Source of the DNA: Oculina patagonica
Taxonomy: Eukaryota
NCBI RefSeq assembly: GCF_052425735.1
Contig: NC_135760.1
Span: 1,612,001 to 1,676,000, forward strand
Direction of reading: 5' to 3'
DNA length: 64,000 nucleotides
A program made the position numbers and the translations under genes. The notes beneath the pieces are model-generated. The model was not told where the DNA came from. It was given only the letters and a program-made list of their open reading frames with translations, and ran no database searches. This document shows, one piece after another, positions 3,932 to 33,200 of this stretch; positions within the stretch are counted from its first letter, which is position 1, and every line of letters starts with the position of its first letter.

Positions 3932-4852
3932 ATGGCAAACTCTACAGGAGAAGGAAACTTCTCAATCAAACTAAACCAGGCATTCAGCGCTTCACCAACA
4001 GGCATAGCTGAATTTGTATCAGCTTTGAACATTTTTCTTTCTATCACCGCATCTCTGGGCAATGCTCTTATCCTAATTGCTCTTCATAAAGTCTCGTCTA
4101 TTCATCCTCCGACGAAACTTTTCTTTCGAAGCCTGGCGTTCACTGATCTTTGCGTTGGACTTTTTGTACAGCCTCTCTATGCGATCTACAAGTTGTCTCT
4201 TTTGAAAAAGGCGGGCATGAATGTTTTGTATTACGCTTACGAAGTATTTTGGGCTTCGAGTTTTATTTTGTGCGGAATATCTGCCTTGACGTCGACCGCA
4301 ATTAGTGTGGACAGACTTCTCGCCCTGTTGCTGGGACTAAGATACAAACATGTCGTAACATCAAGGCGAGTTCGTGTAGTTATAACTTTGTTCTGGTTAA
4401 TTGGTGCATCGACTGGAGGGATCTGGGTGTGGAGAGAAGATATTGCCAGGAGTGAAATCGTTGTTGTCATAACGCTTTCTCTAGTTACTTCGTTTTTCTG
4501 TTACACGAGGATCCACTTCAATCTACGACATCATCAAGCTCAAGTACAAAACAATGTTCCCCAAGGACAACCGAACGGAGGAGGGATTCCATTGAACATA
4601 GCAAGATACAAAAAGACAGTTTCTAGCATAATGTGGATGCAGTTGGCATTAGTTGCCTGCTATGTTCCGATTAGCATCGTGGCTGTGCTAAACAGAGTAA
4701 ATATGAAACAAATAGAATATGATGCGGCTTATACAGCCGCAGGTACTTTAGTCTTCTTGAAATCTTCTCTTAACCCGATCTTGTACTGCTACAAGATCAA
4801 AGACGTGAGACAAGCAGTAAAGACCACAATCAAACAGCTTTGCTGTTTTTAA
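3932..4852 (+). CDS. Intronless class A GPCR (cnidarian melanocortin/adenosine receptor-like family), 306 aa
   Basis: Seven hydrophobic segments. Motifs: GN (TM1), LAxxD (TM2), SVDRL in place of DRY, CYVP (TM6), NPILY (TM7). Confidence 0.93.
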   Translation: MANSTGEGNFSIKLNQAFSASPTGIAEFVSALNIFLSITASLGNALILIALHKVSSIHPPTKLFFRSLAFTDLCVGLFVQPLYAIYKLSLLKKAGMNVLYYAYEVFWASSFILCGISALTSTAISVDRLLALLLGLRYKHVVTSRRVRVVITLFWLIGASTGGIWVWREDIARSEIVVVITLSLVTSFFCYTRIHFNLRHHQAQVQNNVPQGQPNGGGIPLNIARYKKTVSSIMWMQLALVACYVPISIVAVLNRVNMKQIEYDAAYTAAGTLVFLKSSLNPILYCYKIKDVRQAVKTTIKQLCCF

Positions 4853-6256: not shown

Positions 6257-6549
6257 GACTCCCATATGACATGAAAGGGGCGGGGATGCTCGTCGTCTCG
6301 CTTAGGGGTGTAAATGTCTGATTTTTTGGTCTCACTTAGGGAGTTCCGGGCAAACAGCCAATAATTGTAGCCGTCAAGGTCTCGTTTAGGCTTGTACACG
6401 AAAAAATATAAAATATAAATTCTATTTTTTTCGTATTTTGGTATCTTGTTGGATTCAGAAAACGCTCGAGCCACGCCCAAATTGATCTCCTTTAGGGCTT
6501 TTATTCAAACTTTTCGATGAGCATCCCCACCCCTTGTATATGGGAGGAC
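6257..6549. mobile_element. MITE
   Basis: Inverted ends CTCCCATAT...AAGGGGCGGGGATGCTCGTCG / CGATGAGCATCCCCACCCCTT...ATATGGGAG. Confidence 0.65.
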
Positions 6550-8539: not shown

Positions 8540-9445
8540 ATGGCCAACATTACTGAAGATGGAAACTGCACAAGCAATATGAGTGACATAGGCAGCGCAC
8601 AACCAGCTGGTATACTTCAATTTTTCTCCGCTTTGAACATTTTTCTTTCCATCACCGCATCTCTGGGCAATGCTCTGATACTTGTTGCCCTTCATAAAGT
8701 ATCTTCTATTCATCCTCCGACAAAACTTTTCTTTCAATGTCTGGCAGTCACTGATCTTTGCGTTGGACTTATTGTACAGCCACTCTATGCAACCGACATT
8801 ATATCTCGTATAACAAAGATGAACGTGAATATTTTGCACTATCTTACCATGGTTTTGGATGTTTCAGGGTGGATTTTGTGTGCAGTATCTGGCTTGACGT
8901 CGACTGCAGTTAGTGTGGACAGACTTCTTGCTTTGTTGTTGGGACTGAGATACAGACATGTCGTAACAATAAGGCGAGTAAGTGTGATCATAATTTGTTT
9001 TTGGTTTATTGGTGCTTCAGTTGGAGCGCTAAGGATGTGGAGAAGAGACATTGCCTTAAAGCAAGTCGCTTGTCTCATAATAACTTGCCTGGTAACTTCA
9101 ATTTTCTGTTTCACAAGCATTCACTTCAAACTACGACATCAACAAGCTCAAGTACATGTTCCCCAAGGACAACCAAACGGAGGAGGGATTCCACTGAACA
9201 TAGCAAGATACAAAAAGTCAGTTTCCAGCATAATATGGGTGCAGTTAGCATTAGTTGCTTGCTATGTTCCGTTTGGCATTGTTGCAGTGCTTAATGGCAG
9301 AGGAATTGAGAATTTCCTGGCTTTGTTAGCTACAGAGACTTTAGTCTATCTAAACTCTTCTCTAAACCCGATCTCGTACTGTTGGAAGATCCGAGCAGTG
9401 AAAGAGGCAGTGAAAGACACAATCAAACAGCTTGACTGTTTTTAA
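8540..9445 (+). CDS. Intronless class A GPCR paralog 2, 301 aa
   Basis: Same motifs as 3932-4852 (SVDRL, CYVP, NPISY) and high similarity along the whole length. Confidence 0.93.
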   Translation: MANITEDGNCTSNMSDIGSAQPAGILQFFSALNIFLSITASLGNALILVALHKVSSIHPPTKLFFQCLAVTDLCVGLIVQPLYATDIISRITKMNVNILHYLTMVLDVSGWILCAVSGLTSTAVSVDRLLALLLGLRYRHVVTIRRVSVIIICFWFIGASVGALRMWRRDIALKQVACLIITCLVTSIFCFTSIHFKLRHQQAQVHVPQGQPNGGGIPLNIARYKKSVSSIIWVQLALVACYVPFGIVAVLNGRGIENFLALLATETLVYLNSSLNPISYCWKIRAVKEAVKDTIKQLDCF

Positions 9446-14314: not shown

Positions 14315-17300
14315 TATGAATTATCGATCAGAAACCCAATATGTTCTCTTGTGAGCTTTAGTAAGGTTTTAAAGAACTGTCTGGTTTCATTTGTTTTTAT
14401 CGAACTACAAATAATCCCTAGGTCTATTTGTTTCATAATTCGAAGCGCACTTTAAAATGGGACATCGCAGGGAACAGTAAGCCAGAGCTGAAATTGATCA
14501 TTTTAATAAAATTTGTCATTTTTCTTTGATAAATATTATACATCAACGAAATTATCAAACGTTTTTTCATAATTTTATGAACAATTTCGGTTTGAAAAAT
14601 CTGCAACTAGTACAACAAGATGGAATTTTGACACAATATTTCCATATTTAACTGTAGTTCACTGTTCATTGGCCAAAACTCTAATTCACTCAAATTTCGG
14701 CTCAATTGAAGTACATATTTTTCACAATTATCTTTTCTAAAAGTTTCAATTTACACCTTGTCGAGGACAAGAACTTTGGTAAGAACTTTGAGATATTTTA
14801 AGGTTTTATGTTGACGGAAGATTTGAAATATGTAAAGGAACAAATTTTTTTTTTGCAAAACTCGCCTCCACGTGCAAAACGTAAATGCAAATTAGATAGT
14901 GTTGAAAGGTGGGAAGGGGTCCAGTCTCTTTCTATCGTGCGCCTTCGTGTTAAAAACGGAAATATTTCTGTATTCAACTAAAATGTTCGCCTTCGTTTGT
15001 AATTGACAATCATTTTTATCCAAAATATTTACGGACGGTATTGAATAGGGATACATTTTGAAGTGTTTCTTGATAACCAGACATTAATCTTTAAAGCCTC
15101 ACTGACTTTATCTGAGCTTTCGTCAAAACTAGTTTCGAAATGCTACACAGAACAAATATTGAACTTAGGAAGCGCGAAAGCTTTTGAACGAGATTTTTAA
15201 TTCTGTTTTAATAACTCGAAAACATTTTTTTTTAATTGTGAAATTGCTTGCACTAAATTAAAGTCGCGCCTAAAATTTCTTTAGATTTTGGGATGATTTT
15301 TTTTTTTGCTCTGTCTTGATTCGTGATCTGTGTAGCAAACCGAAACAAATGTCTTGATATGGCTCGATTTTATTTCTTGAAGGTAACTTGGCAAGCCATA
15401 AACACAATCGAAATTGGCTAAAAATCATTCGGAAATGTTTTATTTTTTATCGGCCGAAAGCGGACGGAAGTTACGGAATTTGCTCGTGTGTTAGAAATAA
15501 TATTTTTAAAATTTACGCGGACTTTTTCCTTTCACAATACTGATGGCTTGCCACTGCTATTTTCTTTAAATATATTGCATGATGATATCACGTTAAATAG
15601 TAATTCCTTGAACGACCGGCAGCTAGAAATATATTTTCAGAAATGAGACGAGCAGGTTAAAATGACTACGAATATAAAGTTTTTGCACGCTTATTTGAAC
15701 ATTGAGAAGGTGGGGACATTTCTGAATCGCTATAGTTAAGAGAGTTCAAAAAGTGGGGTTCAAATTACCCGGCGATATAAACTTTCGTTAATATTTCGAT
15801 TTAAAAGTGTTTTCACCCTCTCAATGTTGTGTAGAAACGTTGCAGTTGTACAAATTTTAACATGCTCTTCTCATTTCTGTGAATAGATTTCTAGCTGCTC
15901 GTAGTTTTAGGGTTAACTATTCAACAAGATATCATCATAAAATACACCATCTTGTACACAAACAAGGGATTGGATTCAAAAATCGTTTCGTTTGCAAAAA
16001 CTTGTATATTTGGCATCAAATTTTTTCAATCAGTTTGTTTACAAGATTGGGTATGTTGTGATTTTTTGGCGGGGAAAAAAAGGGGGACCCCTTAAATTTT
16101 TTGTCTGAAAAGTTGTCAGGGGAAACGCTGTGCAAATTTTTCCAATTTTTCCCGCCAAAAGTCTTAGTATATATAGGAGGAATTTTTTCTTCACACCTAT
16201 GTAATTTACTTTAATCGAATTTCAATAAACTAATTAAAGTTTATTTGTGAACATAGCTTTTATATTATTAATTAGATATTGTTGAGATCAATAAAAGAGA
16301 CAAAAGAAGACTAACACGACTTTGTTTGAGTATTGTTTATTTTATTGTGTGCATTAAATAATACTTTAAATTATTAAAGTTATTATTCCTAGCACTTAGA
16401 TATTACTTTACATGAAAAAAAGAAAACTAAAAAACGGCGCATGCGTATTTTGAGCGCCCGTATTTTTCTAAGTTTTTTGGCGGGAAAATAAAAATTTGAC
16501 ATAGGTTACCTTGAAAGCACATTTTAAAATTCAAGACAACGTTTGCAGTAAATCATTTATTTTTGTTCAACTTATATCAACAAACTCGAAGAAGAAAAAG
16601 CTATAAGAATTTTCACTACAAAATGTACGTATCGTGTAAACAATTTTGAGCATTTCAAGACAATTTTTACTGGCTTCTTGGAAAAATCATCGAAAAATAA
16701 GTCATAAGTCAGAAACACTAGCAAATTTTTCATGAAAATATTTGCTGGTAAAATAACAACGAACACAAATTTGAGCATTACAAGACAAGGTTGAGTCTTC
16801 TTAGTAAAAAAAGCTCGCAAATACTTGATAGTGAAACTTTCGTAAATCGTGGCTAGCTAGTAAACGACTTAAGTTTTATGCTTATTTCCTCGTACAGGAC
16901 TCTGTGGGCTCAAATATCTATTTTATCGACTATGGAGTAATTTGTTTTTGAAAATAAACTTTGCTGGCGATATGTTTTGTCGATAGACACTAGGTCAAAA
17001 TGTTTGCTAAAAAATTGACCATGAAAACAAATTTGTGCATTTCAAGACTTTGTTTACCCTTGTGGTAAAAAAAATAGAGAAAAATGCTAAAAAATTATGA
17101 CAAACAGACAATCTGATCAATCATTCTAGGAAATTTAAACCCACAGTGTCTCTCGACAGAGAAGAAACAAACTTATGGCCTACGCTAAACGTAAACAAAA
17201 AGGCTCACTACAATAATTTTGCCAGGTAAAATCAGGGCTCAATTTGAAAGTAAACAAGACAATTAGGATAACTGAATAGCCCAGCAGAAAATAGTCAAGT

Positions 17301-17514
17301 TACACGGCGAAAAATGTTGTTTACAGCGACTTAAACGGCGAATTACAAAACTTGAATGTAAAATTGCATAGTGTGTCTTCGTGTTTACAGTTGTATCCAA
17401 AAGAGAAATAACTTAACCGACTCAAACAGATACCAAATAACGAACAAATGAGTGTGTTTTCAAAATTTCCATATTTCTGTCGCTGGAATTTATATATCTA
17501 ACAATCTGTCTTAC

Positions 17515-19900
17515 TTTGCTCCATTGTATAGTATAGCCACCTCCAATGTATTGCCTCCAAAGTTTTGCCATTAATGCCTTGCCTCTAGACCTTTTCTTCA
17601 CTGAGCTGTTTCCAGTTTGTAATGTCGTTGTTCCTTTCTCGTGTTGTCAATTTCAGAAATCCTAAAAATAAATAACAAAAATTTGATTTATTGAACATGT
17701 TTTGCGACAGACAAACATTTGGTAGCTATTAAGTTCCGTTGCTGATTCAATAAATATGTAAAAACACGTATGAAGGTGTTAACTTCGAAAATAAGAAATA
17801 CCTACTCTTGACAAATTTTGCGAAAGAGATTTATTGTCGGCTGCATATGGCAGAATAACAAATTTTTGACCATTTAAATTATTCATAATAACCGCCATGA
17901 TGGTTTTCACAATATAATTAACAATTATTCACCGAAGTGGAGGTAAATATCCATCACATTCACCGACACTGAGGTGAATAATTGTTTTAGTATATACCAC
18001 TCTAGTTGAATAACTAGCGGACCAAAACATCACTTTCGGTAAACAAAGCGACGCGCGAAGACAGTTTGTTTCTCTTAACCTGCTCGGAAGTGAATAGCAC
18101 TAGCTTGGCTAATCACCTCCGAGTTAACCAATCAGCGCGCGCGAAAAGCACCATTCATTTGTGTGGTATTAGCCTGCGTTGCAGACGAACTAAAACCTGG
18201 TATAGTCAGGACTTCGTGTCGTCCAAACAAACGGCTTTGTTTATTGCCGAGTCACTAGCCAAAACAATACAAATCTATGTGAAGCGGTGTCCGGTGCAAT
18301 TACACCAAAGACAGTATGGTTAAAAGCAACATCTATATGAAAGCAAGAAATTTCCAGCTCGTACCAATATCCTGTAAACGTGCCACTTACTCCTACCCCT
18401 CATCCTTCAACACCAAGTTTGGCGGAAGGAGGGTAAGGGTGCTGTTTGTCGCTGAACAACATGTTGCGATTGGATTTGGTTTAAAGGGACTATTTATTTT
18501 ACCAGATTTTCGAACTCAGAAAATTTATATTTGTGCCGCAAGAAACCTAAAAATAATAGTCCAATTTTATTTGCCTGTGGGTGACTCGGATGGAAACGGA
18601 GTTGCAATTTGAACAAGTTAGGCAAACGTTTTCAAGTTGTTTCCACGCGTCTTCGAAATATCGATATTTATAGCCGTAGCTTAATTTCTACTCGTAAATT
18701 AAGGTTACACCTTCCTCTAGATGTTCAAAGTTAATATTTATTTAGGGTTAAGTTGTCCACCACTAATTTCAGAACAGTTTAGATCAAACATCTGCACAAT
18801 CCCCGTGACATAGTCCCTTTAAAGTCAGTCATTCTCGAACTGTTCTTTTTGTAACGTTAACGCTGTTTAAAATTTAATTTCACTATGCGAGCAGCCATGT
18901 CCAGCAGACAGGTTACGATAATAAAAAAAATAATCAACTAATGAATATTATCTTGATGTACCACTGAATTCTCACAACTAACATTAAAGTAATGTATGGG
19001 AATTACTTAGGAGAATTGATATTTCGATCCTGGGTAAAAATTTAGTTACCTGAGTAATCGCATGATAGCTGGCCTCGTTGGTTTCTCAGTTTAATCCTAA
19101 TGTTCGTTGCTTTCCTGAAAAAATAAAAAAGATCAGAAGAAAAATTAACAACAATTTAATTCATTAACGACATTGTTTTAGCCAATACCTGAGCAGGAAT
19201 TTCTAAACCCCTCTCTTTTGCAAGATCTTAAATAATAATAAATCTTTGAATAGTTAAAAATCGGAGCAGAGTTTAACGTAGACTGAAAAACCCAATGTAA
19301 AATGCTCTAGACTACCATTAGAAAAAATATATCATCTTGTTACTAAATGGTTAAGCAGGATATTTTTGGAGCATAGATGGGGCTAATGATTCGCTTTGAA
19401 GAGAATGTCAGAAGGCACTACGAGATCTACTTCGTGAACGTACAGCAAGCTAATTAAATGACCAAAAATTAAGCAGCTTTTATAGAGGTCACCAGCTCTC
19501 ACATGGTTAGTTCAACAAACTCTCATGACATAAAAAAAATTGTCGAAAACAATTGGGAAATAACTTAGGGGAGAGGGAAAGGGACGTCTGTCCAAAAACG
19601 CCGAAGAGTTTGATAGAATTCGCAGTAAATATGACGATCACTTTTTGTGATTTTCTTCCACAAAATAAAAAAATTGAATTCCGCAATGATCAGAGGTTGT
19701 TTATGTCTCCCGGCCACAAATACTTAGGTGAACAAAAATTTGAAACCTGACTATTTCTGGCAATTGTACAAAGTTTACCTTAAAATAAAAGCTAAAATAC
19801 GTCTTCAATATGTAACATTACTTTTGTGTGTAGTTCTCACCTTGAGAAAGACTCGAAACCCATTTGGCGAAAGTTACGCTGAATAAGTCTCCATTTTGCT
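17515..19900 (-). other. Putative spliced lncRNA or small-ORF transcript (3 predicted exons)
   Basis: Consensus splice sites give exons ~19900-19841 (AAG|GTGAGA), 19114-19050 (ttttcag / CAG|GTAACT) and 17661-17515 (tattttag / AAA|GTAAGA). The spliced frame from ATG 19863 to TAG 17585 is open for 54 aa. Confidence 0.4.
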
Positions 19901-20774
19901 TGAAGCACGTGCTTTCAAAGTTTGCTTGAAGTCAAGTTCTCGTTGCAGACATTTATGTTTCGTAACATTTCCAAACGTATGGACAATTCCAAACTGAAGC
20001 TTGAGGCATTTTGGTAGCACCAGGGGAAGCCAAAGCAAGAGTTATACAAGTTTAAATTTAAACATGGATGCTAAACCTTCGACCAGAAGAATGCAAAGTG
20101 ATATTTGCATAATTTGCAATTTAAATTCTCAAACGTCTGGGACCACGCACGGTACGGTTGTTTGCAATTATCTGATTGGCTAGTCTTTTTATTGGATAAT
20201 TTAACGGCGGAATGTTTAAAATTTTCTCTTCCTTTCTTGCTAGCCAGAAAACTTTTCTCGTGGAAAGTGAATTTTCGAAATAACAAAATTTATCATTCAA
20301 TTTCTTACATCATTTGCAAAACAGAGTGTTTTTCTCTGTGTGGCAGCGGTTGCATGTATATCGATTTTACCACGAAACGAAATTAAATCTCTGTGAAATC
20401 AACTGAAATTAATTGTCATGAAAAAATACTTTTAAAAAGAGATCAATTATACCCTTTTATGTCCGTTTGAGTCTAAATATTTTGAAGATAATCGGTTACA
20501 TTTTTTACCAGTGTATTAATTATTGTCCGATTAAAGTTATCAACAAAATAGTCATTCTTAGTTTGTAACAAACTGCATCGCATCTGAGTGGTGGATCAGA
20601 GCCACCTTAAATTTATGAAAAAATCAAATCGTGGTGAATACCACCTTTAGCTTTTTGTTGTGTTTAGATTATTTTGGGTGAGTAGCGTAAAATGCAAAAT
20701 CTAGATCATTGTTAGTGTTTCTACTACAGCTATTCGCTGTTTTGTGCGGCGAATACCGGCAATAGATGGGAAAC

Positions 20775-21345: not shown

Positions 21346-22351
21346 TCATACCTTTTACAGTGTTTAATAGCTAGAGAGCCAAACGGAAACCGGAAGCGTT
21401 AATTGTGAAAGAAGGTTTTAATGGGGAGGTGGCTTTTACGGTTAACGGTTAAAATTTTGTTTGTTTGTGTTTTTTTAACAGCTAACGGTTAATTTCTTTT
21501 CATTGCGGTTAACAGAAGTTAAAAATTAATTTCTATTGTTTTAAAAAGTGGAAAGTTAATTTCCATCATAAAAAAACGTATTTTGATTAGGTCTTAGGTC
21601 TCTTAGGGACGATGAGTGATCGACTCTGTTTTAGTTAAATTACTGAAAATTATTTTACGTTTGGCTCGCCCTCTCTATCTAACCTATGGCGAAATTTTCC
21701 GTTTAGCGAATTTTTACGAACAGTTAAAGGTCAGATCAAGTGACCTCGGGGAACTATGCCACCGGCAATTGCTGAAAAATGGTAGTCTTATGGTACAATG
21801 GTTATGCACAGTCAAATAGAATAGCTTTTTTAATGGTTTTTAGCACTTATATACTAAAACACTGCAATTCCCCCAAAACACTGCAAAAATTAGCTTGTTA
21901 CATTGGGGCACATTTCCCTCAAATCTACTTTTTGCACTACCAAACCCGCGAGTAATAACCTAATTTTTTCCAGGTTAGCCTAAACAGGCTCTTACATAAA
22001 TGGTAGTTAACACAAATTCAGGCTATTTATAGGCCCTTATTTTTGAAAAAAATGTGCATTGTTGCTAATAGAACTTTTAGCAATATTCAGCCAATTATTT
22101 GTATAAAATTTGCATACCAAACAAGTGTTTGTGTACATTGTATACATGAACAGCAAAGCCATGTCCAAACTTATTTTCCCCAAAGTAAACATTTTAAATC
22201 AATTTTTGAAAATAAAAACCTGTTTTCAAATTTTAGGATAAATAGGTTCTTATAAAAAATAGGGGCCTAATTTGCAAATTTTAGCCTAACAGGTTCTTAA
22301 ATGTTAGGTTCTTATTCGCTGGATTTTGTATGAGTTTCTGTCATTTTACTT

Positions 22352-23320
22352 TTAATTCGCGGTGGTAATTATAACCTTATGTCGATCTATTCGATCTACA
22401 CTATGTACCCAAGTAACGTTTTCAACACAGCAAAGCTGTCTGATTGTGTCTTTTACCGCTTCTCTCACTTCTCGGATTTTCCAACAGTATAAGAGCGGGT
22501 TTAGAGATGAGTTTAAGTAGACAAGAGTCTCTGTAGTTAGCCTAGCCACGTCACTTTTTATCCCTTTGACATCCAACACAGCCGCTACAGCAAACGGAAC
22601 ATAGCAGGCAACTAATGCCAACTGCACCCACAAAATGCTAGAAACTGTCTTTTTATATTTTTCTATGTTCAGTGAAATCTCTCCTCCTTGGGGAACATTG
22701 TTTTGTACTTGGGCTTGATGATGTCGTAGTTTCAGGTGGATTTTCGTGTAAGAGAAAATCGATGTTACCAGAAAAAATATCAACAAAACAGCGGCTCCCT
22801 TCAAAGCAATATCTCTTCTCCACATCCGGATACATCCACCTGAGGCACCAATTAATAAGAAACAAATTATAACCACACGAGCTCGCCTCAGTGTTACGAC
22901 ATGTCTGTATCTCAGTCCCAACGACAGGGCGAGAAGTCTGTCCACACTTATTGTTATCGACGTCAAGCCAGATACTCCACACAAAAGCCACCCTAAAGCA
23001 CGAGTAACTTTGAAAATATCGCACAAGACATTTTCGTCCATCTTTATTAAACGAGATACAATGCTGGTTGCGTAAAGTGGCTGTACAACGAGACCAACAC
23101 AAAGATCAGTGACCGCCAGACATCGAAAGAAAAGTTTCGTCGGAGGATGAATAGAAGAGATTTTATGAAGGGCAATAAAGATCAAAGCGTTTCCCAGAGA
23201 AGCGGTGATGGAAAGGAAAATGTTCAAAGCGGAAAAAAATTCAAGTATACCTGCTCTCGGTTCGGTGTTTATTTGGTTAAGTTTGTCTGCGCAGTTTCCA
23301 TCTTCAGTAATGTTGGCCAT
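22352..23320 (-). CDS. Intronless class A GPCR paralog 3, 322 aa
   Basis: Same family motifs (SVDRL, CYVP, NPLLY). Inverted relative to paralogs 1 and 2, with a longer C-tail. Confidence 0.93.
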   Translation of the reverse strand: MANITEDGNCADKLNQINTEPRAGILEFFSALNIFLSITASLGNALIFIALHKISSIHPPTKLFFRCLAVTDLCVGLVVQPLYATSIVSRLIKMDENVLCDIFKVTRALGWLLCGVSGLTSITISVDRLLALSLGLRYRHVVTLRRARVVIICFLLIGASGGCIRMWRRDIALKGAAVLLIFFLVTSIFSYTKIHLKLRHHQAQVQNNVPQGGEISLNIEKYKKTVSSILWVQLALVACYVPFAVAAVLDVKGIKSDVARLTTETLVYLNSSLNPLLYCWKIREVREAVKDTIRQLCCVENVTWVHSVDRIDRHKVIITTAN

Positions 23321-24142
23321 TTTTTCCTTATGGTAAGAAATAAAAGCTTGCTGCGAAGAATGATTTTAGTTGAGAAAAACCGTCAGCTTACAGCTCAATA
23401 GCGCGAGCGAGGATGATTTTATATGTCGTTAATAATAATACGTCCACTTGTGTGTTTATATATAACTGTTTTCCGGGACTGTATATTTTATTGTCCCATT
23501 TGTCCATTTTCTTTTAATTATAAAGAGTCACGTTTGTGCTGAAAAGTGAGTGGTGTGTTAGTTAGGGAGAATTGCGATTGTGTTATTTTACCTAGCTGTT
23601 AGAATATGAGATAGTTGAAAACAAATTGGAAGCAAAAAACTGAAAAAATGGCATTGCTTGAGTTTTCAACCAAAAACAAAGCATTATAATAGTTTGTATT
23701 TATTTACAAGTAGATGTTGTGGCTAAACATTCGGCAATAACTGATCACAGAAATTTGCATATTCCTCCGAGACCCAATATACAAATATTCGTTTTATTTA
23801 ACACTATACCTGCCAAAATAGACAAAATACTGGCGGTTTCTCATCGGATAAATGACAGCCGTCTAATATCAAAACTGCATAAGGGGGAAGTAAAAACTTG
23901 GTAAAATTTTCAGCATATTTTACGTATAATTGGACGAAGCTGTAATACGTATGCGATTATGAAACGCATTTTCATTCCGCCCTTTTGACCAAAACAAAAT
24001 TGAGTTTCGTGTAACGGAATATAACTTATTATGGTTACATTTGTTGCGGAGGCGAGCGGTGGTCAAGTTGTTTATTAGCGCTCAGTCAGGCGGAGCCTAT
24101 GTCTCCATGTTTATTGGTTTACGTTGCATTGTATTGGGAATA

Positions 24143-24573
24143 CAGTAAAAACTCGCGAGTAAGAACCTAACACTGTAAGAAGCTGTCAGGCTGAAATTTG
24201 CGAATTAGAACCCATTCTTATAAGAACCTATTTAGCCTCAAATTTGGAAACAGGTTCTTATTTTCTAGAATTGATTAAAAATGTTTACTTTTGGGAAATG
24301 AGTTTGGACAAAGCATAACTGTGCATGTATATAATGTGTTATTCTAAATGATTATTGCTTCATTTTTACATGAGCACTTATGTGGTATGCAAATTTTATA
24401 CAAGAAATAGGCTGATACTACTAAAAGTTCTATCAGCATCAATGTAAACTTTCTTCAGAAAATAAGAACCTATTAAGACCCTGAATAGCCAAAATTTGTG
24501 TCAACTACCAGTTTGTAAGAACCTATTTAGGCTAACCTGGAAAAATTCGGTTTTTACTCGCGGGTTTTTACTG
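24143..24573. mobile_element. Tc1/pogo-type MITE
   Basis: TA|CAGTAAAAACTCGCGAGTAA ... TTACTCGCGGGTTTTTACTG|TA. A decayed reverse-orientation copy lies at ~21938-22331. Confidence 0.8.
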
Positions 24574-26304
24574 TATCGCTTTGATCTTAGAGTGGCTCTT
24601 TCTTTCCTTGTGTACAAAATTGATATATGTTGATTGTGTATTAAAAATTGAAGACATATTTTATCTTTTGCAACATGAGTACGTTCATTAGAAATACTTT
24701 CACAAAAGGTTAATTTAAACTAAGCTGGTGAAACACATTTTACATGTAATTCGCACCTTTCTGGCTTCGATTAATAAAGCGTTTTTAGGAATTACGAATT
24801 TACATAGAACTGGGCGCCATTCAGTCCAAGCAAAGTCGAATAAAAGGCCCTCAATGGGGTTACTATTATTAGCCGTTAGCCGTAAAACAAACAAAAAATT
24901 AACCGTTAGGCGTAAAAATTGAAGAATTTTAACCATTAGCCGTAGAAATGTTAACAGTTAAAAAATTCCAGCCACTAAAATGAAGGACTCAAGATCTCCT
25001 GTCAAGACGCGTCGAGCTCAATCTCGTCCCCAGAGGCCGCGATCATTTTGGTCTGCGGCAGGGATCGGGACCCTGGCATTGAAACTCGCCACAAAGGCGT
25101 CTAAATCTTATTGGCGCAAAACTGGTTCGTTTCACCACACTCCGGCGCACGCGCAGAATCTGGAACCAGGATTTCCTGCCTTCCTGGTTCCGGTTTGGAT
25201 CGCCAGAGCCGCGAGTTCCGACCGTGGAGGGGACGCAGGCTGGGAGGATTGCGTGAGCATGCTTTTTGCGTGAGCTATGCTTTTGGAAGCTGGTCAAGGG
25301 GAACGGAGAGGTTGAATAATTGAGCTGGGGTTTCACAGGAGAACACTGAGAACGCTAAGTTCGTTGTCCATTCCATCAAATGCTAGCTCGTTGATTTAAG
25401 ATTTAACAAGCTTAGCACCCATTGCACTAAGGAGTTTGACAAGTGTGATGGCTAAACAGCAAACACGGGTACCTTGTACCTCGACATAACAGAATTGTTT
25501 TATTTCCAGCTGACAGCCATTCCGCCTGCCAGTCCCTAGGCGTTCTCCCCCCCGGGCGAGCGCGAGGTCCACGTAAGGGCCTGGGAACGGGTTAGCGTGC
25601 CGGCCGGAGAACCGCCAGTGTCATCGGGACGTCACGAAATTCGCGCCAAACGAAAGCGGGAAGGGACGCCGACCGCGCCACCGCAAAAAAACCCCAGGAA
25701 GGCATGTTGGTACGGACCGCCCGGGAGCCCCACACCTACCACCCCTGTTCCAAAATCCTTCTGATGTATAAGGTCAACTGCATTCTTGCACTAATGGCTC
25801 TTTGTGTTTTTTGGTTATTCTTAGAAATAAACCGAGACGTCAAAAAAGTCTAACAAAGCTAACTCATGATTCGGCAATGTTTTACTATGATAAATACGAC
25901 GTCTGAAATTTTTTTTAAAAATTAATTTTCTAATTTCTATCTTATTGTTACTCATGAATTGGAAGAGAAAACACTAATCAAAACCAAACAGAAGCGCCAC
26001 CAACGGGCGGCCCCTCCCCAGGGGTGGCACGCCCACACGGGACAGCGGATGGCGACGCGGGACGATGATGACTCCTACCCGCGCCTGCCCATGTCGACCA
26101 GAATGCATGTGAAGAGATCAAGAAGGGGGAAAGAAGTGGGAGACGAGGGAGAAGAGAAAAAAAAGATGAGACAGAAAGGGGCAAGTACGCTAATGATCAA
26201 GATAAGAATGGGAGTACAAAGAAGTCAGACGCACCTACGTGATTGGTGCAAGAGAAAAACAAATCACAAGGCCAGGAGGGATTCAAATCCAAACCCTCTG
26301 TGTC

Positions 26305-27560
26305 ATGGAAACGGACACCAGGAGCCGGTGTGATGACCCGACTGATCGAAACAGCCCATGACACAGCGCCACTGGAGGCACGAAGAGTGGGCCGGACAAC
26401 GCCAGTGAGAGAGAGATTGGAGTCCCGGGGGAACCATGACGCCGACCAACGAATCAAAGGTGGAGGGGCAAAAGAGGCGACAACTGGTGTGAAATGTGGA
26501 AATTGCGACAAGAAAAGCGCACAGAGTTTGTACTGTTTCCAGTGTTCTTCTTTCTGGTGTGATTTTTGCATCACTGGGCACAACATAATCCGGACTAATG
26601 CCGGGCACAGGGTGTTAGCGCTGAAAGACTTTGAAGATCAAGACATCGAGGACGTATTGAAGCGACCAGCATTTTGCCAGCAGAAGCACCACGAAAAAGA
26701 AGAGTTAAAGTTCTTCTGCAAGGACTGCGAAGTTGCTATTTGCCATTTTTGTGTTGCAACTATTCACGAAGGTCACGCCAAGATACTCCTCGAAGAAGCG
26801 GCATGTGAACGAAAGTTGCATGTTCAATCTTTTATTGAGTCTTTGAAGCAAATAGCAGAGGAAAAAGTTGAAAAAGTCAGGAAACTCGACGGAATGATCA
26901 CCAAAGTTCAAAAGAACGTTGGTAACGTAAAAAGAGAAGTAGAAATGTATGCAGCCAGAATGGTTGCAGTTATGGAAGCGAAGAAAGCGGAAATTTTCCA
27001 TTTACTTGACAATAAAGCGGGCGAATCACTTAATTAAGCATCTCGCACAGAAAAGAAATGAGACTGGAGATCAGGTGGATATGGTTTACACAGAAATCGA
27101 AAAAAGTGAATCACTTTTGAAACGTAGCACCAGCGCTGAAATCGTACGATTCGATGGTTTATTGGACACAATCCGCTTTCAGGAAGACCCTGTCCCTCCA
27201 CGCATCCCCTGTTTTCGTTTCGTTGGATGTGAAAATAACTTTTGGAACTTAAAGACTAATGGAATAGGTTCTGTGCAGGTTAGAATTCCTGGTGGGTGCA
27301 TCCTGTACGTTAAATACTTGGACAATGCCATTGATGATGCACGCCTTTGTAAGGAGTTCAGTGCTTACGGAACAGTCATAAGTGCTAAGGTCATGATGGA
27401 CGACAAAAATAACTCCAAAGGGTTTGGTTTTGTTGCTTTCTCGTCCAAAGAAGAAGCCACTGAAGCTTTAAATGAGATGAATGGGAGAATTTTGTTATCC
27501 AGGGCACTATATGTCGCCGTAGATCGTGGTTCTTCCACGGGTCTTCTCCTTAAAGGTTAG
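26305..27560 (+). pseudogene. TRIM (RING?-Bbox1-Bbox2-coiled coil) fused to a PABP-RRM4-like domain; disrupted in this assembly
   Basis: B-box1 is CGNC..CFQC..WCDFCITGH..H and B-box2 is CQQKHH..FFCKDC..ICHFC..IHEGH, followed by a coiled coil. After a +4 nt TTAA duplication (27030-27037) the frame continues into an RRM with RNP2 LYVKYL and RNP1 KGFGFVAF. The RING region 26305-26480 is garbled. Confidence 0.85.
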
Positions 27561-30233
27561 GATTGTATATAATGCCCATCGCTACAACTATTGATCCAGG
27601 GTCCCTTGCATCAATGGACTGAACAAAACAATGTAAGCCACAGGGAACGTGTTTAGAGGTTTGCCTGATTGAAGTTAATAAGCTACTGGTAAAACCTGAT
27701 GCACACTCTGACTCAGGAAAGTTCGACATTACGTAGACCCAAACCACAGACTTTCGAATTCTCTAAGTATTTAATTTCTCTTCTTTTGCTTCAAACTTTG
27801 TAAACTCACGCGCCATTTTCTTAGATTTGCCACAGAAATCAGAGTAACTTGTAGGCTGAAATGTTTTAAAACTCGTCACATAAATATTTATTTAATATAA
27901 TAGCATTCGATTTTTCTTAACATGAATGTAGGAGCCTGGGCGATTGCAGCCGGACTTTTCACCAAAATATTTAACAATTATTCCAGGGTTTAGTTCTTCT
28001 GCAACGCAGGTGAATGTAGGCTGAGGGGATTGTTTTTATTTTTCACCAAAATAACTTACAATTTTGTGATATATAAAATACTTCTAACTTTCTTCGTCAT
28101 TTTAGTGTTGGATTGCTGAGAGTGTATGTGATCTAGGGCCGTTTACAAGCAGGCGGGTAACCCTAGACAGGGTCCCAGACCGGGACCCACGCTCCCACTT
28201 CTCTCATCGACGTGACGGCGCAGGGAGTAGTGCAGGCCCAGCGCAGGCCCGCCGCGCCGGCGCACCCGGGAAACGCCCAAGAATAACGACACGAACAAGG
28301 CCGTGCCTGGGAGGAACGCACAGGGAGGCGGGGAGGGCCCACCCGAGGCCGGCACCCCCCGGGGACCCAGCACCAGGACCCACCGCACGCCAGGCCCAGA
28401 AAAGGGAAGGAGGGAAGGACACGGAGAGAAGCCAGACACGAGATGTGACAACGACAACGGAGACAGGAAAATGGCAAGAGACAAACAAGTCGACAAGCTG
28501 GCGGGCAGGACCAAAAGTGACAACGAAAGCCGGAGACGACTCATCACAAAAATGTGGCAAAAGCGTCAGCAAATGGTCCCCAATCCCCAATGGGCACTGT
28601 GCACGCGATCTCTGCCGTCCAAGGTCAATTGTTGTGTCACACACGACAAAAATGTCACATAAAAAGCCCGTGAAACCCGGCATAGTCACGGACCCTCAGT
28701 TGCGGGCTGTATCCCGAATGGGACACCAGGTGCCGGGACTAGTGCAGTTCTTTCATGTACGAAATATGACAGGTGGGAATCGCGATTCCTGTCTCTCGTT
28801 CCAGTTCTCCTAAATGTCCCTTTCTTACCAGTTCACTTCAGTTAGTTGAGCAAGCCGTACTTTATTACTTTAGAGACTTGTTTTATCATCAAGTTCTCTG
28901 ATCTGGGAAAAACTATTTAGGGTAATGAGTAAGAAGATTAACATTACGCTGATGCAACCAGTTTTAATTTCAAAATAAACTATTATTTACAAAATCCAAA
29001 CTTTACATTTCTTACAAAGTTACTTTACAAAATCTTTCCATATAAAGAGGGCTCTTATACTTTATAATAAACATTAACCCAACTATTCATTTGATTTTTG
29101 CACCATATATAAATCTTATGTATTTTTTCCCCACAAGCCAGTACAAGTTACCCATATCAATATCCAAGTACAGTAAAATGAATTTTGAAGTGTGAAATAA
29201 CGATTTTCCTCAATTGTTGTTGTATATAAAGTATTTTGTGTTAAGAAAAACTAACTGTAACGAGTAGATTAAACAAGTACAAACGCGAACATGACACTCA
29301 ATGTGAACTGTTTACATTTTACCAAGTCCAACGGACTTAAAATCACCCCCGATATCTACGGTATTAATAATATAAAATGCTTTTCTAGCACCATTTCTTT
29401 AGATAAATCACTGAAGTAAAATTTCTCAATTAAGGAATGAGTGTCAGTAATCAAAATGCAGAAACAACTGCCACACAATAATAGTTAATTTCAAAGATGA
29501 AATTAAAACTTGCATTCCTTTCTGGAAAATGTCGACGCCTTTTGAAAAATTTATAGAACCTTAATTTAAAGGTTTTTTCCAACACTCCTGAAATTAAAAA
29601 ACTCTCATCACTGAGTGAACTACCTTGCTAATCTAATTACCGTAGCCCATTGCTGTACTGATTGAAAAAACGAACACAAAAAAGTTGTCTCTTGTTGAGT
29701 AAGAAGGAATCCAAACCTGTAGGTAAAATTGTAACTTAGCTTTCCCAAATTAAAACTTGCCTGTTATTTTTACAACCCAGTTACAAGGCAAATCCCCAAT
29801 CTACATCACCACACCCAACAGGAGTGTCAAAAACAAACAAAAGAATAACTCCCAACCAGAGATCTGGGCACCCCGAGACAATACAAGGTGGGACACCAAC
29901 GAAAGGTGTCCCGGAACGCAGCTGAACCACCAGAAAAGGAAGCACGACGGCACTGTGCCCGAGAGCTGGCCCGGCCCAACGACACCCGAACACGGCACGC
30001 CAGCGAACGGAGCCACGAAACGGTCGGGGTGCCCTGAGGGACTGCTGACAATCTGCGAGTAGAACTGACCGATGAATTTAACAACACTCTTTCTCAATGA
30101 TTTACATATTACTATTTTCTTTAAGCAGAACTTTAAATATAAGTTTTTCCAAATAATTTCATTGTCTGAAATAATTTACATCAATATCAATATTCAGTGA
30201 TCACTGTAAGAGGTTATTTTTCTGTGAGTGTGG

Positions 30234-33200
30234 TTATTCTGTTTCCATGCGCTTGACATGTGGCAATACCTCCCACTGTGGGACATGCAGATCAAACTCC
30301 AGAGCCACTACAGCTTGGAATTCAAACTTGAGGAGTTCTTTCACTGATATTCGAAGCCTGTCCTCAATAGCCTGTAATAAGAATAATAGGGTAAACGTTA
30401 AGTCAATTCAATCCTTGGGATTCGAGGAGCTAGAACGCTAATCGGTGCTGGTTGCACCTGCTTATAAAAATCCAGTTTCAGAGAACAAATGAGATTTTGT
30501 AAAATCATATTTGAATTATTTTAATCAATTCTTTGATTCCTGAAGTTAATCCTACAGTGTGCTACCATGCAAATAAGGGAATACTAGTAGGCCCTGTCTG
30601 CGCACAGGCTATACATCATGAACTTTCCAAAGATACAGTTTGCAACTGGAAGAAATTATAATACCTCAATAAGCTCCTTGACTTTGTCTCTTTTCATGTC
30701 ATCATTAAATTTTGCTGCTAGCAACAAACAGGACCCTAAATACAACAACAAAGATAAGCAAGGTCTGGTCAAATTTATGAAATTATCAATGAATACTGGT
30801 TTATGAGCTGAAGCAGGAGAAAAATGGAACTGCTTCTATCTGTACAAGTGTTGCTATGAGAATACTTATGGAAACTGTATCAATGGGGCCGGGGGGGGGG
30901 GGAGGAGGGAGAGGATGGGCCCAGAGCACCGAGCGCCGGGAGAGCGGGGGGGAGCGGCAAGAACGGAGCGCACGGATGGGGAAGGAGCCGCAGGCAAACC
31001 ACAGGACACGGGGTCAGTGTACTGTAACACGATCGAAGTCACTACATTTAACCTCTTACACTAATTACTGTTTGTCATTAGTGTAGGTACAAATTGTAAC
31101 ATGCCATCTTATAAACCCTTTTGTACATTTGAAAATTGAAATGCTGACTCGCTGCACATCAACAGTATGTTTACGGTCATTTTATCATTTTTACCCCATT
31201 TTAAAAATTCCAGAGGTTGACTGTTTGATGAAATCTACAGGACACCACACCTGAGTTTTAACTTCACATCTCCACCACTTAAGTTTTTAGATGTCCTCGC
31301 TCATACAAACTTTGTTTAAAAACTACACTTCAGGCATTAGACAGAAGCTTACCTGCCAGCAACTTTCTATTTCCTTTACTTATTTTTTCCTGTAAAAGAA
31401 TGATACCAGAACATTGTCAAAGACCCAGAAAAAGAACATGTTTAACCTTAACTTGAATTACAGACACCGGTATACAGAACATTTTGGTGTGCAACAAATG
31501 CAGACTTAACACACCGGCGACTTGCAAATTTCTTTTTAAGTATGTATCATTTAATATTATTGAGAGCCACATGTAAACAGGGTAACGGGAACATTATTCA
31601 GGCTAACCAGGACCTTTTTTCAGGCAAACCAAGGTGCTATTCAAGCTAACTGGAGTGCAAGTCTGCCAGTTTACAGTTGTCAACCACTAATAACATTTAG
31701 TTCAATCAAAATAAAATAAAAATAACAGCTAGGACAATGCTTTTAGTAATACACATGATTTACTGACTGACATGATTTTCTCAGTAAAAATTAGCCTTGA
31801 ACTAGCTAGTGTGAATGAAAAGAAGTAATTATTAATGATAAAAGCATTGCACAACCATCATAATTTTACGACCTCCCTATATTGTGTACTAGTACTAAAA
31901 CATGTAACTTAGAACTATATGTACATGTTCTGGCTTGCAAACGCAGGCTATTTTTGAAGATTATGAAAAAACAGTTGAGTTGCATCACCACTGACACCAA
32001 GGTCTTAAAATACACAATTTTACCACATAATGTTTTGACAGAAAACTTTAAATAACTGAAACAACTACAAGTATGTTTACCTTTAAAATTAGTTTTTCAA
32101 AATAGACAAAGGCATAAGCCACTGTTGTCAGATCCAGCTGACATTCCTGAAAAGAAGAGATTGGAGAATAAATTATTTGTTTTTAACAGCCAGAAGACAT
32201 ACGATTTATGACGCTTTAATATTACATTATTGGTATTACAAAACTGGTAGAGAGTGGAAGTGTTAATAATTAAACAGGTTCTGCAGTATAACAAACACAA
32301 CAATTGACAAGACTATGTTTAAGTTAATTAATATTAAAAAACTTACCTGTGAAACAGCTATTTTGACAATATCTTTCTTTAGGCTGAAAAGTGAGAAACA
32401 AAAAAAAATTGCATTTAACTGAACAGCTTCAGTACAAGTTAAGTGTGCCAAAGACATGGTGGGTTGCTAATCCATTGCAGGTAGCATTTCTGTAATACCT
32501 ATCTGCTTACGGTGCCTCATATGGAAGGAGGCTCTGTAAGAGTTATTAGTGCCTTGGCCAAGATCCAGCACTATCAATCTGGTTAGCCCTCAAACCTGGA
32601 ACACTTGATCCAGAGTTCCATTAGGACACCCAAGCTCTCACTGTAAGCTTTTCATTGGTGCTATGCACATTAAAGTAAGCAGACCTGTACCTTCGCAGTT
32701 TAGTGAGTGTAATGTTGAGGTTTGGGAACTTTTCCCTGAACTGTTCATTCAAGTCTTTTTTCAGCTCAGATGGCTTTGCATATGTTATCATGGATACCTA
32801 TAAAGGAAGTCAAAATAAATTACCGCAAAATCTCAGTTAAACCAAACAATCATCGTTTCACTTTGATTGGTTTGTGCACAATACAATTTTTGTCATGTTA
32901 TTAAAGAGCTCAGCAAACATAAACCAATCAAAAACAATTAGCATAATTATACACATAACTAAGTTATGCTGGGTCATGAATATTGGTTTCCAGGTTAAAT
33001 CTGTTTTGACCTGAAGATTGGATCATAACGGGCGTAGGATCTTTGATGAATTTTGGGATGTTTGGCAATGTGACGAAACCAGGGGATGAAACACTGTCTT
33101 GAGTGTTTGTTATTAATTTCTCAAACTAATAAACAATTCGTCAAGTTAAAACAAAGAAAATCATAACTATAAAGGGGTGTTCATACCCATTCTTAATTAG

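Follow-up and report, generated by a model that had tools for sequence, protein, structure and literature searches.

Did a TRIM gene of stony corals acquire, in place of its own C-terminal module, the fourth RRM of the poly(A)-binding protein (PABP), and has the resulting chimera worked as a gene? The question is raised by a plus-strand locus in a 64,000-nucleotide stretch of the genome of Oculina patagonica (the window), in which two B-boxes are followed by a coiled coil and then by an RRM. TRIM proteins diversify through swaps of their C-terminal recognition modules, the fusion known as TRIMCyp being the textbook retrocopy case, and the TRIM-NHL ligases (class VII, which includes TRIM2, TRIM3, TRIM71/LIN-41 and Mei-P26) bind RNA through their C-terminal module. 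On balance, we favour the reading that a TRIM gene captured PABP RRM4 cDNA in frame, giving rise to a chimeric gene that was once under constraint and has recently begun to decay.

Pfam searches place the domains collinearly on the plus strand between positions 26495 and 27518 (Table 1), with zf-B_box matching two stretches of the open reading frame at 26243-27037 (1.5e-14) and RRM_1 matching within the frame at 26949-27560 (5.6e-18). This is the domain order that a sequence-only reading of the window had described, and the '..NGIGS..' linker and the RRM peptide that it quoted match the sequence as well. Its further description, 'all without introns', implied one open frame, which is not what is found: the first open reading frame comprises the two B-boxes and the start of the coiled coil, whereas the remaining coiled coil, the linker and the RRM are encoded in a different plus-strand frame. 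The coiled coil consequently does not follow the B-boxes in a single frame, being cut by a frameshift and a TAA that closes the B-box frame. The B-box zinc ligands and the RNP motifs are intact in the window. Relative to the homologous contig of a second coral (L001), the window contains four extra nucleotides, hence the double TTAA. In the DNA run X1, two variants of equal depth extend over 26917-27183, one aligning with 0 gaps and the other with 4 gap letters somewhere within the span; this pair fits a real, possibly polymorphic, 4-nt insertion, and the variant with four fewer letters could be in frame. An origin of the coiled coil-RRM junction as an assembly chimera was considered and rejected. 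The same junction is present in independent assemblies, namely L001 (Logan), the locus L010 (ENA) and contigs of the runs X1, X2 and X3, and is therefore not an assembly chimera.

Table 1. Features of the chimeric locus, with positions given in window coordinates
Feature	Position	Strand	Basis
Trace of 5' UTR and RING-coding region, T-poor, with many deletions	26262..26479	+	Alignment to L002 RING DNA
B-box 1	26495..26614	+	Pfam zf-B_box; 60-68% identity to coral RING-BB-BB-CC proteins
B-box 2	26669..26779	+	Best Pfam zf-B_box stretch, residues 143-179 of the ORF from 26243
TRIM coiled coil, divided over two frames	26780..27170	+	Homology to the family coiled coil
TTAA TTAA, 4-nt duplication, with frameshift and TAA stop at 27035-27037	27030..27037	+	4-nt gap in DNA alignment with L001
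Linker, TRIM-derived, up to the filamin start point of the parent family	27171..27290	+	'GIGS' corresponds to 'GIGA' of L002 directly before filamin
RRM from PABP RRM4 cDNA	27291..27518	+	RRM_1 5.6e-18, identity, tree, intron absence
Stop codon of the RRM frame	27558..27560	+	ORF reading
3' flank alignable with the second coral's copy	27561..27795	+	Aligned to ~27704; extension to ~27795 by eye

The B-box and coiled-coil piece has at least 313 relatives at E-values up to 0.001 among the candidates scored. Nearly all of the relatives among the matches listed come from coral assemblies and coral metagenomes, the best of them being 60-68% identical; most start with a RING, and two, from Stylophora, are named TRIM56-like. 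A parent-like contig, L002, encodes, uninterrupted by introns, a RING, B-box 1, B-box 2, a coiled coil, filamin and NHL repeats, and the TRIM homology of the window ends at the 'GIGS' motif, immediately before the point at which filamin starts in L002. Comparison with L002 revealed no filamin or NHL similarity past 27290, where the C-terminal module of class VII would be expected, and for the sequence that follows the RRM, blastn and tblastx comparison with L002 showed no homology to the TRIM parent, nor was any to PABP seen by eye. The proposed TRIM2/3/71-like scaffold is borne out by this large coral family, whose intact-looking members continue into filamin and NHL repeats. L002 is itself interrupted, by an in-frame stop past its coiled coil (~1062) and by a change of frame ahead of its NHL repeats (~1650), and many of the family's members may be pseudogenic or affected by errors of assembly.

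The provenance of the RRM was traced along several lines. It is 78% identical to RRM4 of coral PABP over 73 residues without gaps, and in an exhaustive profile search the best-matching stretch in most four-RRM PABPs lies at approximately residues 290-375, which corresponds to RRM4. In a tree that included RRM1-4 of seven PABPs and a TIA-1-like outgroup, the RRMs of the window and L001 form a clade (97/92) that is sister to coral PABP RRM4 (94/76) and nested within the RRM4 clade (97/98). The RNP1 octamer is intact, and RNP2 retains its aromatic residue, with the conserved Asn replaced by Tyr. Coral PABP genes possess a phase-1 intron inside RRM4: in L003, which comes from a coral other than O. 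patagonica, the exon closes at 6263, just past 'NNSKG', and an intron of 221 nt (6264-6484) separates it from the next, which starts at 6485; seven exon fragments recovered by protein search (P0002-P0008) read into differing intron sequence at the same point. The RRM of the window is uninterrupted at this site (~27420) and therefore derives from a spliced mRNA. On all these counts, identity and profile match, phylogeny, and the intron present in PABP of another coral and missing here, the earlier assignment to PABP RRM4 is upheld. The accompanying notion of retro-capture survives in part, since the donor was a spliced mRNA that had lost its intron, whereas what was captured amounts to only ~228 nt from the interior of the cDNA, neither end of which falls at a PABP exon boundary, and no poly(A) was found near it in either the window or L001. 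Judged by these features, the capture is not a classical LINE-type retrocopy.

Searches for fused proteins elsewhere returned few candidates. In a collection of 5.8 billion sequences, queried with the RRM piece (word-indexed search) and with residues 1-160 of P0130, the deposited gene model for this locus (length-relaxed search), no other protein that joins a B-box or coiled coil to an RRM appeared among those listed, the candidate lengths being 99-315 and 243-773 aa. An exhaustive profile search of 1.84 billion representatives yielded no B-box-RRM protein among its best 150 matches, a set rich in multi-RRM PABPs, which could conceal a remote fused relative with a score under ~176 bits. The only fused matches among those listed in the protein searches were the L001 fragment and the window's own gene model, so that the architecture check proposed at the outset produced no intact fused protein among the listed matches. 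A search of JGI metagenome DNA for an intronless RRM4 gave six matches, all of them ordinary PABPs. An RRM class is not mentioned in one TRIM classification paper (PMC3503706).

The second copy was recovered twice, as a Logan contig (P0001, L001) and within an ENA contig of 595 kb (P0375, locus L010), and the two versions are 99.8% identical. It shares ~80% nucleotide identity with the window and has the same coiled-coil tail, linker and RRM. In L010 the chimera is preceded by two 7TM-receptor genes, and in the window three related intronless receptor genes of the 7tm_1 type lie upstream (3932-4846 and 8540-9439 on the plus strand, 22358-23320 on the minus strand), with 65-74% protein identity to the two receptors of L010. 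Since receptor genes lie upstream in both loci, the window and L010 are syntenic and the fusion is older than the split of the two corals. The L010 copy has lost the first half of the RING, keeping only the last Cys pair; a 27-nt deletion has removed the zinc-ligand histidines of B-box 2, and an in-frame TAA follows B-box 2. Both known copies of the chimera are broken, and by different lesions.

Several features of the surroundings were observed in addition. Inverted repeats at 22040-22327 and 24140-24576 (up to 84 nt at 89%) flank a 7TM-receptor gene of the window, around 22329-23923; the same receptor gene is oppositely oriented in L010 (7405-8970), a difference that looks like an inversion between the repeat arms. 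The chimera itself is flanked by repeated elements (25400-25590 and 27883-28073) whose contig depth is very high in all runs, up to ~1900, and weak collinear matches to L010 lie inside the first repeat (25428-25525) and at the edge of the second (27826-27933). Downstream of the L010 chimera, open reading frames at 16623-17856 and 18891-20114 encode a Harbinger-type transposase (DDE_Tnp_4) and a YqaJ/viral alkaline exonuclease, which are mobile-element genes.

Comparison of the window with the second copy gives dN/dS values of 0.12 for the B-boxes, 0.34 for the main coiled coil, 0.93 for the coiled-coil tail with the linker and 0.31 for the RRM (dS 0.54), each estimated from a small segment of 73-173 codons; the intact neighbouring GPCR genes give 0.32-0.44 (dS 0.37-0.44). 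Between the RRM and the PABP of L003, likewise from a coral other than O. patagonica, dS is 1.46 and dN 0.12. These substitution patterns indicate a long functional period, the domain parts having evolved through much of their history in the manner of working genes. The dS of the B-boxes is very high (1.1), which hints at gene conversion with paralogues, a process that would mimic constraint. At 0.31, within reach of the neighbouring genes, the RRM shows no sign of positive selection, and the suggestion that its RNP1 and RNP2 aromatic residues were retained through a period of selection is in agreement with these values.

No readable RING could be found in the window. Upstream of the B-boxes there is a trace in which 218 window letters align to 340 of the 5' UTR and RING DNA of L002 with almost no insertions, and in which 66 of the 97 T's (68%) are deleted, as compared to 18-28% of A, C and G; depth in four public runs is zero up to ~26354. 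This trace falls in one of six T-poor patches of the plus strand (25593-25756, 25950-26225, 26304-26490, 28194-28584, 29783-30066 and 30864-31043), which contain 6-11% T and are nearly devoid of TT dinucleotides. Two DNA runs and two RNA runs give the patches a depth of zero or one far lower than in the flanks, and most of the patches are spanned by joints in contigs of those runs, for example 30883>31025, a clean skip of 141 nt. Comparison of T-stripped sequences on both strands identified no source for the patches within the window. The patches probably arose as artefacts of assembly, for instance where gaps were filled from poor reads, and the RING, its lesion falling within such a patch, may therefore be intact in the real genome. 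As assembled, the window copy is unable to make an RBCC-RRM protein, its frame being shifted and its RING garbled. The RNA-binding ligase that the sequence-only reading gave as one possible product is accordingly not encoded by this copy as assembled, and the only other known copy is broken as well.

The probable artefactual nature of the patches is one reason to weigh the possibility that the gene is alive, the RING lesion being an artefact of assembly, the TTAA duplication an error or confined to one haplotype, and a full RING-BB-BB-CC-RRM ligase being made. We regard this as rather unlikely. It would be in line with the zero depth of the T-poor patches in four runs and the bridging of them by contigs of other runs, and with a RING patch that reads as a copy with T-biased deletions and not as diverged sequence. 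The X1 variant with 4 gap letters, the similarity of dN/dS to that of intact neighbours, and the preserved B-box zinc ligands and RNP motifs point in the same direction. However, X1 also contains the 0-gap variant, so that the insertion is probably real in the population, and the second coral's copy has three independent lesions. Moreover, there is no intact B-box-RRM protein among the listed matches, the deposited annotation covers only the RRM part, and the RNA cover of the locus is best accounted for by an antisense neighbour, as follows.

Contigs of the RNA run X3 cover 27100-30370 continuously, including the RRM, and carry no strand. Their joint 30370>30664 has CT..AC ends, as expected for a minus-strand intron, and exons of a spliced minus-strand gene lie at 30043-30370 and 30664-30737; searches of single exons against Pfam and a protein atlas gave no identity for this neighbour. 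The RNA cover over the RRM is best explained by the minus-strand gene, whose long 3' UTR would lie antisense to the chimera and reach down to ~27100. The deposited model for the locus (P0130, hypothetical protein ACROYT_G008538, Oculina patagonica) begins inside the coiled coil and splices the RRM open reading frame (27082-27557) to two T-poor patches (~28141-28710 and ~29783-30062), which are open only because stop codons need T; beyond the RRM the model is probably spurious.

Gene callers predict a product at this position in both corals (P0001, P0130), and it could be proposed that only this short C-terminal product matters, consisting of the coiled-coil tail and the RRM without RING or B-boxes. 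Its length would be 159 aa in the window, where the ATG lies at 27082, and 198 aa in the second coral. The frame is open in both species and the RRM has a dN/dS of 0.31. Against this, the coiled-coil tail and linker that would make up the rest of the protein are neutral (0.93), the length of P0130 is due to the stop-free T-poor patches, and both its promoter and its sense-strand transcript are putative; we consider such a product improbable as the explanation of the locus. Equally hard to credit is a mosaic dead on arrival, its fragments joined by repair or by a mobile element and never functional, with gene conversion and small samples feigning constraint: the captured piece is internal and has no poly(A), repeats flank the locus and the B-box dS is inflated, but the fragments are joined in frame, both sides of the join coincide with domain boundaries, the RRM retains 78% protein identity to PABP despite a dS of 1.46, conversion by an intron-bearing PABP gene would not leave the copy intronless, and the locus persists in two species.

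Returning to the capture of PABP RRM4 cDNA by a TRIM gene, we infer its mechanism and the past functions of the chimera as follows. An ancestor of O. patagonica and at least one other stony coral would have carried an intronless TRIM2/3-like gene encoding RING, B-box 1, B-box 2, coiled coil, filamin and NHL repeats. This gene would have lost its filamin-NHL tail, which would have been replaced by an in-frame piece of ~228 nt from a spliced PABP mRNA, encoding exactly RRM4. The product would presumably have been an RBCC E3 ligase that forms dimers, in which an RRM with the RNP1 and RNP2 aromatic residues had taken the place of the RNA-binding NHL module, and such an RRM may have made the ligase RNA-directed or directed it to the partners of PABP. 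On this reading the chimera kept its place beside the 7TM-receptor cluster and was subject to purifying selection during much of the period that followed the separation of the two corals. In its assembled form the window copy is disabled by the TTAA duplication in the coiled coil and the unreadable RING, and the copy of the other coral by its different lesions.

With respect to known systems, the scaffold has its homologues in a coral family of the TRIM-NHL type, represented by the single-exon RING-BB1-BB2-CC-filamin-NHL gene of L002, and the chimera would by analogy have kept the logic of an RNA-binding E3 ligase. Unlike TRIM-NHL proteins, it lacks filamin and NHL, the RRM beginning exactly at the filamin point, and in the window copy the RING and the reading frame are damaged. 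In TRIMCyp, the fusion of TRIM5 with cyclophilin A found in owl monkey and macaques, the CypA retrocopy is complete, has poly(A) and target-site duplications, and is joined by splicing. As in that case, the C-terminal recognition module of the coral chimera was replaced from the processed mRNA of a housekeeping gene, and the donor intron is missing; in contrast to it, the coral segment is an internal fragment of ~228 nt, in frame within one exon and with no poly(A) found. The comparison with TRIMCyp made in the sequence-only reading is therefore apt for the swap of a module from spliced mRNA and inapt for the manner of capture, which did not involve a complete retrocopy. The decoy for viral proteins that target PABP, which that reading named as one possible function, is a putative role only. 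The likeness to RRM4 of cytoplasmic PABP extends to the gapless alignment, the intact RNP1 and the nesting within the RRM4 clade, whereas RRM1-3, the linker and the MLLE domain of PABP have no equivalent in the chimera, in which the RRM stands alone.

The architecture and its PABP cDNA origin are real, old and once constrained, and the gene is apparently decaying. The value of the case is limited by the damage to both known copies, and a sense-strand fused transcript is putative. That an intact RING-BB-BB-CC-RRM ligase is expressed in some stony corals, or from a haplotype free of the extra TTAA, seems doubtful; if it were, it would constitute a new TRIM class, which may ubiquitinate factors on poly(A)/AU-rich RNA or trap proteins that target PABP. 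The expanded coral TRIM family that hosts the chimera is probably immune-related. The locus extends the principle of module swapping to a cnidarian; the donor differs, being PABP RRM4, and so does the mode of capture, by which a short internal cDNA fragment would have entered in frame at a domain boundary. Conserved between two corals and with gene-like dN/dS, the chimera is thus a candidate for the exchange of one RNA-binding module for another, NHL for RRM.
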